Source: Monocercomonoides exilis PA203 (taxonomy: Eukaryota; Protista; Preaxostyla). Taken from it: DNA of 64,000 nt. The notes beneath the pieces are model-generated. The model did no database searches. It was not told where the DNA came from and saw nothing but the letters and a program-made list of their open reading frames with translations. Position numbers and translations under genes: made by a program. Positions 32,715-38,935 of this stretch are shown here, one piece after another. Location of the stretch: assembly GCA_001643675.2 (NCBI GenBank), contig LSRY02000004.1:930001-994000 (forward strand), read 5' to 3'. How positions within the stretch are numbered: position 1 is the first letter of the stretch; every line of letters starts with the position of its first letter.

Positions 32715-35700
32715 TCAAGCATTTTGAAAAGACAAAGGATTCAGCAGTGAAGCCGGAAGTGTGCCAGAAAACTGTTCATCCCTCAAAAATGGCATAAAAT
32801 CATCAAAAATTCCTCCACTTTCCTGTTCATCACTAAGATTGGTTTCATCATCAGACAATAAAGCACCAGTAGAATCTGAGTCACTCTCGTTCATAATTTT
32901 TGCTTCTCCTTTTTGTGATAAGTCGGATTGTGGTAATTTTGACTCATCTAACTGTAATAACTGTTTTTGCTTTTGCTGTTTGTGTATAAGCCTTCTTTCG
33001 TCTTTCTCTTCTGCCTCGTCATCTGAATTCTGTTCTATTGAATATGATCGGCTGTTGCTTTTCTGGTTATAATAAAGCAGAGGAGAATTCAACTGAGAAG
33101 TTGAAATGTTTGTATCTTTTTCTTTTTCTTCTTCTTCTTCTTGAACATTTTCGATTTTATTACATTCGAGAAGCAATGGACATATTTCGTTCCACTTCTT
33201 TTTCTCTTTTGCTTTTCTTAAACGTTCTTGCCTTTTCTCTCTTCGTAGTTTTCTTTTCATTTCCTGCCTTAATTCTCTTTCTTTTTCTTTTTCTTCTTTT
33301 TCTTCCATTTTTTTCTGTTTTTTCTCGAACTGTTGAGCCATTCGCAATCGTTTTGCTGTTATTCTCTCTTCCTTCCTTTCTTCTTTTTCTCTTTGTTTCT
33401 TCAGTTTCTCGTTGCATTTATTAACGCATATTTGATTAAGTAACGCTATAAGTGTTGATAAAACTATATCGCTATTCTCCTCTGTTGTATCACTATTCTT
33501 CAATAATAAAGCCTGAGAATCGTTATCTTTCTCAATTTCATCTTCAGAGAAAAGTCTTTCTTCTTTCTCCTCATTTTCTTCACCGCATGAGTATTCTTTG
33601 AAAATCTTTTCTTCTTCTTCTTCTTCTTCTTCCCTCTTAAGCGAAACCATTACGTTGTTTAGAAGATCTTCAGATCTCTTTTTAACTTCCTCATCATTGG
33701 CATCCTTCCAAACTATTTGCCACAGTGCTTCCGCAAAACGTGGAACAATTTCTTTTTTCTCTTCTTCACAAGTTCGCTCCGCATCAGATAAAAATATTTG
33801 TGGATGCCTATTTTTTAAAGAAAGAAGGCATTGTTGGAAAAGATTAGGCACAACAGTCGAAAGAAGAAGCCAACGAAGAGTTGTTGGTTGCGCATCTTGT
33901 GGAGTAGGCAAGTCCAAAGCTGTAGGCAAATATTCATTAAAGTCGGGAAAAGGAGAAAAAGGCGATGTTGTTGAATGCCTGGAGCTGTTTTGAGAAAATG
34001 ATTTCTCTGATGATTGAACAGTGAAAGAGGAAGAGTTTGTTTCGATTTTGTTTGGTTGAATCAAAACGTTAACAACCAAGACCAAATCCTGAAGTCCATT
34101 GCTCTGGTCAATCACACAACAATTAATTGATGAAGAAGATGAAAATGAAGATGAAGATGAAGGAGATGGAGACAAACGTTGTGTTGATTGATTAATCAAT
34201 GAAGACATATTTGCACTGTAGCTTGTTGGAAGAAAGGTTGAAGTGTTTGGTAAGGATGCACCATCCATTGAAAGATAAGTTTCAGAACAATTTGTTTCAA
34301 GCATTGTCAATTCTTCAAGTTCACTTTCTTTCAGTGGGAGAATTGTTTCGTCTCTTGAAATTGATTCTTTGTTGTTGACGTCTGATGAAACTGGTGAATA
34401 AGAAAACATTGACTGATTGTAAGCAGATTTTTTATTTGGCTTTGCGTTTGATGTTCGTTGCTGATATTTTGATGATGTGTTATCAAATATCTTTTGCCTC
34501 AGAGGAATGCACATGCCAAGAAAGGCTTCATGGCATCCAAGAAGAGTGTTGCTCAAAAACTTCTTCACTTCTTCGATTGTGGCATTTTCAACATAAACTC
34601 CACATTCATTACACAGAGAGGAAGTGCGTGTGAAATTAAGAATTGGTGAAATGAGAAGAGTGACAAGAGAAAGTGGTGTGAATGATGAAGAAAAGAAAGA
34701 TGAGATGCTACCCTTGCTAAATGTTTCAGAAGATGTCTTTGCTTCTTGTGGGTCAGACCGAGCTGCATATTGAAAAAGATTTATTCCATTTACATAAGGA
34801 AAAAAGAACAATTTCGCTTTTGTTTGTGATGAATCATCGAATGAAGAAGGCGATGTTGGAGAAATAGATGGAGATGGAGTCAAACTGCTATCGGATATTT
34901 TTGTTTCTACATTCAAAGCGTTCATCTCCTCTAAATCGAATTTTCCGGTCAGATGTTGTAACTTTTCATCCAAACTTTCTGAAAATGGAAAACAAAACGA
35001 ATCTGATGGTAGTTGTGTTGAATTTAGCGGTTCAGTAAAGTTATTTTCGACCGAATCAAGTTCTGAACTGAATGAAACGCAAGTACCGTCCCAATCATTA
35101 CTTCTCTTGCTATTTAAAATGATCCCTGCTTGAACAACAGATTTCCCAATACAGAATGTATTTTCCGAAGAAAGTGAAGATGATGCTGTAATTTTTCCAA
35201 TTTTTGAAGATGAGCTAAGAATTTCTTCAACATCAGAAGAGCTATATACAAAAACAAATGGATCGCTGCAAAATCCAACAACGTCTCCAGCTAACATATC
35301 GTCCAACTTTCTCTCTCCGATAAGAAAAGTTGCTGAAATATTGCCACAAAACAATGGAAATGAAGATTCACTTTCGCTTTCAAATAAAGTTGTCGTAACG
35401 CTTTGTTGAAAATAATCCGTTTCTTCTTTTTCTTCTCGTTGTAATTCAGTTTCGTCAAAAAATGCTTGACAATTGGTACAGAATTTTATTGTAACTTGAG
35501 GATTGCATACGGTTAGAATAGAAACGAAATCTGTAAGCTCTGAAGCAACAGATGAGATAATTTCTCCGGGAATTTCAAGATGCATTTTCCAACCGTTAAC
35601 ATTTGTCATGGGGCAAGCAGATTCGTGCTGTTCAATTGAAGTTTCATTGGTTTCTGCAATCATCCTTATCTGAAACTCTGTTATGATACCATTTTCTTTA

Positions 35701-36168
35701 AAATCGATAAAAGATCATGCAAAATTATTTGTAAAAAATTAGAATAAATGTATGTAAAATTTCAAAAATGAAAAAAAAAAACGAAAACCTGTTGTGACAA
35801 TGGATAAGTAACTTCCAATAGAATTCTGAGCAAATAGCAATGCATCCTTGATTTCTTCGCTTTTTATAATATATTTTTCTATGTTTAATGAATTCATAGC
35901 AAGACATGTTTCGCTCACTTTAAAACTATAAGGTATTTGGAAAAAAGCAAATCAAACATGAGATGGCAAGGATATGAGTGCTGCCTTTCCAAAGGACATC
36001 TCGTCCTTCAATATTCAAACGTATAATAGGAGTGTCTTCTGGTTCTGCTTTCGGGCACAACGCAATAGCAATTGATAAAAACTTGTGACAGAACTTTTAG
36101 GAAAAAATCTAAATGTTCAAGCATACTTCTTTAATTAAAGGTGAAATTTGGCGGCATTCCATACTCAT
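32715..36168 (-). CDS. Divergent topoisomerase VI B-like protein (MTOPVIB/TOPOVIBL-type Spo11 partner), 4 exons
   Basis: Exons 36168-36127, 36081-35958, 35917-35789 and 35695-32715 join in frame via GT-AG introns. The N-terminus follows the GHKL-fold pattern with degenerate ATP motifs. The transducer-like segment LFQQCLLSLKNRHPQIFLS..IVPRFAEALWQIV resembles MTOPVIB/TOPOVIBL. Confidence 0.7.
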
Positions 36169-37022
36169 CTTGGAATGGTACCAAGAATGATTAATGATAT
36201 AAAACTAAACAGCCAAACTCACAGAATATTCATTTTCCAGAATGAAAATATTTATTATGGTTAGAATTGAATTTGATTCGCAATAGAACTTTTGAACAAA
36301 ACGTTGAATTAGGATAGTACTTTAAAAAATGTTTGATTGATTAACCTTCATTTTCTCCAAATAATTTCTTGGATAATTTCAATCGTAGAAAATGTTATTG
36401 ATCACAAATTCAAACTACATAACTTCAGCAAAAGTTTTGGTGATGAAACAAATGGATGTGTAAAACGAATCAATGAGTAATTTAGAACAAATGAATAATC
36501 AAGATAATTTCAATATTTCAAATGTTATAAATTTTAAAATTAGTTGATGTTAAATTTTAAGCATCAGCATTCAAAGAAACTGATATTCAAAAAGAATTAG
36601 AGATCAATGTTATGACCTCTAAAAAAGGATATTCAAAAATTAATATCAAATGTTAAAACTATAGAAACACACAAATATCTGGATTTATCAAAAAAATACA
36701 CATGAAAGAAAAATAAAACATCCACGAAATCAATTTCACACAAAGAAACATGAAATGAATTCTAAAAAAGGAGATGCATTTCAATCGCTCCTTTCAAAAT
36801 AATATAATTCATTAAACAAATAAATAAAAGAAGAAGAAAAGGAATTTATACAAACATTAAAAGATTGGTCAACAAAAACAAAATCAACAAAAGAATAGAG
36901 AAGATTTTTTTAACCCAATAAAGTAAACTAATTTGGTAAAAAAAGATAAATTTTTAATAGCAAACTTAATAATCATTATATAACTGTAAATCACAAGTCA
37001 TTAATAAAAAAACAGTATTTCT

Positions 37023-38935
37023 TCAAGCTCTATGCTTATGATGCCTTTTATTCTTTTTCTGATTTTTCCCTCCTTTTGACTTTTTATTTGCAGCTAACTT
37101 CTTCATTTCTTCCATTTCTTCCAAGTTATTCGCATTCAAAGAGGGAGACGATGATGAAGAAGTTCCATCTTTTGTGCTATCTTCTACCATTGGCACACAT
37201 AACTCGTCAACCCACTCAAAATCTTCGTTTATCGTCGGAGTCGCCTCGCAAATATCTTCTGGTGGTTCTGAAAAGTCCAGCAAATCAACTTCCTCATCGC
37301 AGTCAATCAGCTCTTCCTTCCATTCTTTGGCTCTTTCTCTATTTTCTTCTTCGTTTTCTTCTTCTTTTAATTTGTCTAATAAATTGTTTGGCGCAAATCC
37401 AGGAAGCGTGCCTTGAGGACGTGTTGAGTTTGTTGGAATAATGCCGAAGGAAATCGTTCGAAATTGATTTGAAATGTTCTGTTTTGGAAGTGTTGGTTCA
37501 TCCAGAGACGATGAACAGGCATCTGATTTATTCTGAAGTGAAGTATCTTCTTCAAACGGTTGTTGTGAAGAAGATGAGGACAATGAAGATGTTGGAATTG
37601 ACGCGGGAATATTCGAAGGTGTTGGCTGGTATGGCAGCATCTCGACAGAAGTTGTTGATTGCTCGTTAAGTTTGAATGTGGATGAAGTAGGATAAAAAGG
37701 GATTGAAGATGGATTAAAAGGAGTGTTATCAGAAGAGGAAAATGAGAGCGATGGCGAAGAAGTAGAAAAAGAGGAAGACAATGGAATGAGGTCATCAAAG
37801 AGAAGAGAGTCGTCAACTTCAATATCATCGCTAACTGCTTTGAAAGAAGTGAATTTTGAGTCATCTAAGTTGTATTCGATTTCCACTCCTTCTTCTTCTG
37901 TGTTCTCGTCCTTCTTATTTGCGATAGCTTCTTCGGCTTCTGCAAGCTTCTGGGCTTTTAACTCTTTTCGTTTAATGTCTTGTAAGTTCTTTTGTTGATG
38001 AAATATATAAATTAAATAGTGAATACGAAAAAAAATTCTTTTTATAGTTAAGGCTTTTTTCAATTCAAACAAACCTCCTTTTCATTTCCCTTATCATCGA
38101 GCCCTCCAAGCTTCATTTTATCGAGAAGTTTTCTTCGCTTCACTTCCTCTTTGTACTTTTTTCTTTTCCTTATTCGGTATGCCTTGCATGCACATGCGCA
38201 CGCAACAACAAAGCTCGTTATTAACACAAATAGCATAAAAACAAAAAGCGTCATGAATGTAGCATATCCGTGTGGAGGCAACACAGAAAGAAAATCATCT
38301 ACAAAACTTGGATTTGTAGCTGCTAAATTATCTTTCAAATGGAAGCTCAGTGAATCGGAAGATGATGTCTGAGGTTGTGAAATGATTTCAGGAATAGAAA
38401 ATCGGAGTCTTGAGAAAACATATGCTGATTGAAGTGGGGAAGCACAACTTTTAATATTAGTTTGGTGTATCAATTCCTTTTGAATCGATTTACTGCTTTT
38501 GAGATTCGATAAGGAATCACATAAAAGAGAATTATAATTATCAATAGAATTGGAATGAAATGGTGTTTGATTAATGTTATGGCGTGAAAAGTTTTTGTAA
38601 ATCAAAAGTTTGTTATGTATAAATGATAATAACTCAAAAGCGAAGTGTGAAATGGAATTATTAATAGATGATAAAAATGAAATTTTTGAAATGAATAGAC
38701 GATTAATAGAAGTATGAGCTGGTGGATGGAGTTGAAAAGAAATTAATAAACTTGAATTTGGTGAATATTTATTTTCAAGATTGAACTCTTCATTAAAAAT
38801 TGGTTGTGTTAATTTTTCTGTTGATTCGTCTTCAAGAAGTTGGATGAACCTATTTTTCGTTGACAAAGAAAATGAAAAGCATTTTAGGAAAGCTATTATA
38901 AAAATGGTTGAAAAATGGAGCTTCAGTGTAAGCAT
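37023..38935 (-). CDS. Single-pass membrane protein (signal peptide, TM, acidic cytosolic tail), 2 exons
   Basis: Signal-like MLTLKLHFSTIFIIAFLKCFSFSLS; TM YATFMTLFVFMLFVLITSFVVACACAC followed by a basic stop-transfer stretch; intron 38074-37989 (gtttgt..aag) joins the two ORFs in frame. Confidence 0.7.

Follow-up and report, generated by a model that had tools for sequence, protein, structure and literature searches.

We analyzed a window of 64,000 nucleotides (nt), corresponding to contig C36:930001-994000 of a 101-contig, 82-Mb assembly, from Monocercomonoides exilis, an oxymonad famous for lacking mitochondria, and focused on a gene that carries the GenBank label "uncharacterized protein", MONOS_4112. 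The head domain of its 1029-amino acid (aa) protein, P0001, is very probably a decayed GHKL domain of topoisomerase VI subunit B (Top6B), and the gene is the probable best candidate for the missing Spo11 partner in M. exilis. The full statement, which we hold with moderate confidence, is that MONOS_4112 encodes a TopoVIB-like subunit of the TOPOVIBL/MTOPVIB class that binds Spo11 and takes part in forming meiotic breaks. A sequence-only reading of the window had already proposed a meiotic TopoVIB-like gene at this locus; our analysis retains its Top6B-like N-terminal domain with eroded motifs, whereas the transducer matches on which it also relied gave no signal.

Similarity of the head domain to Top6B

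The similarity to Top6B is located in the following segment.

35466..35852, minus strand: second half of a Top6B-like GHKL domain (residues 16-113 of P0001), with intron 3 lying within it

When P0001:1-330 was scanned against NCBIfam (18,950 families), three Top6B models were the only matches: NF003218 (E = 5e-5, 22 bits), which aligned residues 16-113 with profile positions 118-216 of 539, followed by TIGR01052 (E = 0.0031) and NF011438 (E = 0.061). Two in-house Top6B profiles (7 archaeal sequences and 37 archaeal/Asgard sequences), derived from the Top6B genes of five archaeal genomes and from Asgard Top6B proteins, scored 18.8 and 16.5 bits against residues 1-130 (P = 2.4e-8 and 1.1e-7). 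The alignment covers ~95 residues almost without gaps and runs from the helix after the G2 box through the next strands and the 'hGT' strand to the final helix and strand. Two low-confidence AlphaFold2 models show residues 14-109 as helix, two strands, strand, helix, and strand, in keeping with this profile alignment. None of 2000 shuffled sequences reached the real score (maximum 7.8 bits), and the best of 1653 control open reading frame (ORF) segments from unrelated archaeal loci scored 5.5 bits. With a single-sequence query, hhalign against Top6B returned a probability of 41% (P = 2.8e-4). An alignment-free protein-language-model search with residues 1-130 placed GHKL-clan clusters at the top, led by HATPase_c_3 (0.91; 13 of 30 hits) and followed by DNA_gyraseB and HSP90.

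For an Asgard Top6B query, run to find eukaryotic TopoVIB/TOPOVIBL, the relatives listed were only Asgard proteins. Among the Asgard genomes, one Thorarchaeota genome carries three Top6B genes (L136, L137, and L138), one of which is divergent (674 aa, 310 bits vs 543 and 477 bits).

Loss of ATP motifs and lack of a detectable H2TH

The erosion of the ATP motifs described in the sequence-only reading was borne out for those motifs that could be checked. There is no glycine before P0001 residue 28, which means that the G2 box (GxxGxG) is gone, and the 'GT' strand of the fourth motif reads 'GW'. That reading had also assigned 'EFLSIAIA' to the N box and 'SETCLA' to the G1 box; these two assignments are plausible, although they are below detection and lie in the predicted exon 2 and the start of exon 3.

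Profile searches found no match to H2TH or to any Top6B profile position beyond 216. In place of H2TH lies the following segment.

34815..35465, minus strand: Ser/acid-rich linker (residues 114-330; 19% Ser; predicted local distance difference test score [pLDDT] about 25-35)

Within this linker, at 35067-35096 (P0001 residues 237-246), we noted a second, very weak match (0.8 bits) to the Top6B 'dWhGT' strand. It reads 'DWDGTCVSFS' and retains the GT lost in the main alignment; it may be fortuitous, or it may be what is left of an internal duplication or insertion.

We also considered a canonical topoisomerase VI subunit B and rejected it. No H2TH or PF09239 was detectable, the G2 box is gone, Pfam gave no match at E up to 10, and the score of 22 bits is far under the curated cut-off of 274 bits.

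Spo11 and other GHKL genes in the genome

The M. exilis genome contains a single Spo11 gene, on contig C14, which encodes TP6A_N and Toprim domains, and a search of the genome for PF09239 (Topo-VIb_trans) yielded no match. The presence of Spo11 asserted in the sequence-only reading is thus confirmed, and canonical Top6B was not found in this PF09239 search. In the rest of the genome, NF003218 matched only two MutL paralogs plus generic HATPase_c genes, in every case via the shared ATP-motif region. A Top6B derivative that lacks the ATP motifs and H2TH, in a genome that has Spo11 but no canonical Top6B, is TopoVIB-like by definition. In the published inventory, the Spo11 of M. exilis is MONOS_1248, and the Top6B and Top6BL entries are blank for this species (PMC8516963, Supplementary Data 2). 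The same study reported Spo11 and other meiotic genes for M. exilis (PMC8516963), and for this reason the locus adds little as "evidence for meiosis", the use to which the sequence-only reading had put it.

Two long MutL-type genes lie ~170 kb apart on contig C30 (456238 and 284917; L006 and L007), with frames of 1251 and 1240 aa. Both contain HATPase_c_3 and DNA_mis_repair with near-identical domain scores, as if a mismatch-repair gene had recently been duplicated.

Gene model and upstream exons

The 982-aa ORF at 32715-35663 on the minus strand is 100% identical to MONOS_4112, which is single-copy; a search of the M. exilis genome itself recovered no paralogue. The sequence-only reading had proposed that three small upstream exons splice in frame to this ORF. 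This pattern is present, with GT-AG borders at all three introns and exon frames that join, and the third junction already appears in GenBank; exons 1 and 2 are therefore the sole additions to the GenBank model, in which intron 3 is annotated. The elements are as follows.

36127..36168, minus strand: proposed exon 1 (ATG + 13 codons), outside the GenBank model
36082..36126, minus strand: proposed intron 1 (45 nt, GTATGC..CACAAG, GC 0.31)
35958..36081, minus strand: proposed exon 2 (41 codons + 1 nt), outside the GenBank model
35918..35957, minus strand: proposed intron 2 (40 nt, GTTTGA..TTTTAAAG, GC 0.25)
35789..35917, minus strand: exon 3, which holds the GenBank start codon (35897-35895)
35696..35788, minus strand: intron 3 (93 nt, GC 0.17), in the GenBank model (P0001 reads ..SIVTT joined to ENGII.. 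across it)
32715..35695, minus strand: exon 4, the long ORF including the stop codon

The ATG of exon 1 is the first in its open segment, and GTATGC lies directly 3' of the exon. Intron 1 has a second acceptor at 36095-36094, which is likewise in frame and would add 4 codons. For intron 2, the 3' octamer is identical to that of the annotated intron 3, and the 5' hexamer GTTTGA is shared with one homology-defined intron of the Spo11 gene. The frame of exon 3 is open for 7 codons upstream of the GenBank ATG, as far as the acceptor of intron 2; the GTG at 35918 is the tail of this AG acceptor.

The Spo11 gene contains two homology-defined introns, one of 54 nt (L001:1446-1499) and one of 46 nt (L001:1828-1873), whose positions follow from the conserved catalytic-tyrosine and TGKGYPD motifs; their 5' hexamers are GTATTT and GTTTGA, the latter belonging to the 46-nt intron. 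This indicates that introns as short as the proposed ones are real in M. exilis. Apart from this locus, the two Spo11 introns are handy examples of minimal introns and splice-site hexamers in this species.

Composition points to coding sequence in the upstream region. The GC content of exon 2 is 0.41, compared with 0.17-0.31 in the introns and 0.27 in the upstream region; across the M. exilis genome, genes have a GC content of 41%, introns 25%, and intergenic DNA 29% (PMC6759080). Codon log-odds were weakly positive in the proposed frames only (exon 1, +2.3; exon 2, +3.6). When the exons were compared with the Top6B profile one by one, the best local match of exon 2 to the N-terminal half of the profile was the 'PIIRLNIE' strand, the first strand after the N-box helix and the place assigned to it in the sequence-only reading, at a marginal level (52 of 1000 shuffles scored at least as high), and exon 1 showed no similarity signal against the profile. 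In the three frames scanned across 35880-37100, nothing resembling the N-terminal half of Top6B rose above noise. The collinearity with the Top6B GHKL fold that the sequence-only reading had seen along the whole spliced product is therefore statistically real for the C-terminal half, marginal for exon 2, and without signal for exon 1.

A start at the annotated ATG would strip the GHKL-like sandwich of its entire first half, which is an indirect argument for upstream exons. As judged from these sequence features, exon 2 is likely real and exon 1 possibly so, and the GenBank model probably lacks the 5' end of the gene. As proposed, exon 2 would supply the GHKL-like domain with its first helix and its first strands.

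The next upstream ORF (37023-38072, minus strand, 349 aa) encodes a Ser-rich protein with acidic and basic tails. It is separated from the proposed exon 1 by a gap of 854 bp, and the published genome mean is 870 bp.

Proposed transducer region and C-terminus

Three further segments were delineated downstream of the linker.

34455..34814, minus strand: region called transducer-like in the sequence-only reading (residues 331-450), including 'FFPYVNGINLF'
33591..33887, minus strand: three consecutive predicted helices (residues 640-666, 676-699, and 705-738), from a model of pLDDT 33 only
32718..33590, minus strand: Glu/Lys-rich, acidic C-terminal region (residues 739-1029), defined by composition

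Comparison of residues 320-470 and 600-760 with Top6B profiles (hidden Markov model [HMM] searches and hhalign) and with PDB sequences returned noise only. The match of 'FFPYVNGINLF' and 'LFQQCLL..VPRFAEALWQIV' to the transducer of MTOPVIB and TOPOVIBL, as claimed from the sequence alone, thus found no signal in any of these searches. TopoVIB-like proteins have a three-helix ('3H') Spo11-binding module and a WKxY remnant (PMC9665070). The string 'WKDA' occurs at residues 699-702, within the predicted three-helix segment, and it is possible, as a lead only, that residues 640-738 correspond to the Spo11-binding module, with 'WKDA' resembling a WKxY remnant.

Proposed mechanism

If MONOS_4112 encodes the Spo11 partner, its GHKL-like head, the first half of which would sit in one or two short upstream exons, would be unable to bind or hydrolyze ATP. 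The protein would instead be a scaffold: through a helical C-terminal module it would bind the single Spo11 (MONOS_1248), and it would help to build the dimer of Spo11 by which DNA is cut when meiotic recombination begins. Both the binding to Spo11 and the role in meiotic breaks are inferred from other eukaryotes.

Weighing the alternatives

Several observations count against this assignment. The signal, modest at about 17-22 bits, is restricted to ~95 residues of a protein of >1000 residues; when the whole genome was searched in six frames with the Top6B model, exon 4 alone scored 14.3 bits, with E = 0.3. No orthologue confirms conservation: phmmer with P0001:1-760 against 1.84 billion representative proteins returned only the query itself. 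A word-index protein search likewise found no relative besides MONOS_4112, PDB sequence searches with the ORF and with residues 1-130 gave no match or noise, and neither the ORF nor the exon pieces matched Pfam at E up to 10. The single-sequence AlphaFold2 models were unusable (pLDDT 33.5 for residues 1-760 and 39 for residues 1-130), and HMM, hhalign, and PDB sequence comparison gave no sign of a transducer or of a Spo11-binding module. Exons 1 and 2 are predictions from the DNA sequence. Finally, to our knowledge, M. exilis has no known sexual cycle.

The lack of homologues, of a Pfam match, and of a foldable model, together with the genome-level E of 0.3 for exon 4 alone, is what would be expected if the similarity to Top6B had arisen by chance and the gene were a lineage-specific low-complexity orphan of unrelated origin; moreover, the gene had been picked by the sequence-only reading for its resemblance to Top6B, which is a selection effect. 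We nevertheless regard a chance resemblance as very unlikely, given that three curated and two in-house Top6B models give one collinear alignment with P of about 1e-7 to 2e-8, that the score lies far beyond both the shuffled and the real-ORF controls, and that the alignment-free language-model search independently reaches the GHKL clan. That search also bears on the source of the head domain, since its neighbors carry the labels HATPase_c_3, DNA_gyraseB, and HSP90 rather than Topo-VIb, which would suit a head derived from another GHKL family such as MORC, MutL/MLH, Hsp90/sacsin, or GyrB. However, Top6B proteins themselves bear the HATPase_c_3 label (PF13589), as they do PF02518. Profiles of MutL, GyrB, and Hsp90, built in the same manner from 6, 7, and 2 sequences, scored -2.0 bits, no alignment, and -1.6 bits, respectively, against 16.5-18.8 bits for Top6B. 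These scores speak against a better match to MutL or Hsp90, one of the outcomes on which the sequence-only reading would have given up its proposal. In addition, no NCBIfam or Pfam model of these families matches, MORC being covered via Pfam HATPase_c_3 only. An origin outside Top6B is, in our judgment, scarcely credible.

Descent from Top6B may also be combined with a different function. MONOS_4112 could be a pseudo-ATPase that has been repurposed for a non-meiotic role and has ceased to act with Spo11, its long and largely disordered chain retaining a relic GHKL-like head. Only the GHKL-like half-domain is detectable, with no signal from the parts that would bind Spo11, and expression in ordinary cultures is hinted at by RNA-derived contigs from one study, which contain 21-36% of the words sampled from the gene, although the four metatranscriptome runs of that study carry the label 'synthetic metagenome'. 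On the other hand, Top6B-derived proteins act with Top6A/Spo11 in every eukaryote studied (PMC9665070, PMC11302465), M. exilis retains Spo11, and undetectable transducer similarity is normal among TopoVIB-like proteins (PMC9665070). Taken together, such a repurposing seems unlikely to us. Somewhat less probable still is a Top6B-derived pseudo-ATPase kept, in an amitochondriate protist without observed sex, for something besides classical meiosis. It might serve Spo11-dependent breakage during a parasexual or ploidy-reduction cycle, for instance, or play a Spo11-independent role in chromatin via its very long disordered and Glu/Lys-rich parts. A TopoVIB-like subunit acting with Spo11 in meiotic break formation is the reading that we prefer.

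Significance and comparison with known systems

No component of the meiotic break machinery is harder to find than the B-like partner of Spo11. What is probably new here is a TopoVIB-like candidate for M. exilis, where the published metamonad inventory (PMC8516963) has none. The candidate would complete the predicted break-forming core in a model amitochondriate eukaryote, its Preaxostyla sequence offers a starting point for seeking orthologues in other metamonads, and a probable correction of the 5' gene model of MONOS_4112 accompanies it. The advance is incremental, as the TopoVIB-like family is known and meiotic genes of M. exilis have already been reported.

Compared with archaeal and eukaryotic Top6B (NF003218, TIGR01052), the second half of the GHKL domain of MONOS_4112 is collinear, including the final helix and strand 'nP.a.I.f'. 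The two differ in that MONOS_4112 has no G2 box, 'GW' for 'GT', no H2TH, and no detectable PF09239 transducer. Its protein is also twice the length of Top6B and contains Ser-rich linkers and a tail rich in Glu and Lys. The likeness to mouse TOPOVIBL and Arabidopsis MTOPVIB, as these are described (PMC9665070), consists of a GHKL-like head that lacks the Bergerat motifs, a non-conserved linker replacing H2TH, a predicted helical region further on, a long C-terminal domain, and co-occurrence with Spo11, whereas the three-helix module and conserved tryptophan are only suggested in MONOS_4112, by a low-confidence model and the 'WKDA' string.

Within the metamonads, a topo VIB-like protein of Giardia intestinalis has been reported via structural modelling (Allen and Maxwell 2024, PMC11302465). 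By description, it too has a strongly diverged GHKL-like fold and no H2TH, and was recognized by structural modelling, not by BLAST. Because phmmer with P0001:1-760 finds no relative, any kinship between the two metamonad proteins is below sequence detection. The extreme among Spo11 partners is yeast Rec102/Rec104, the Top6B ancestry of which is almost invisible in sequence (PMC9665070). In yeast, the two domains reside on separate proteins and Rec104 has no recognizable GHKL trace, whereas MONOS_4112 retains a measurable trace on one long polypeptide.

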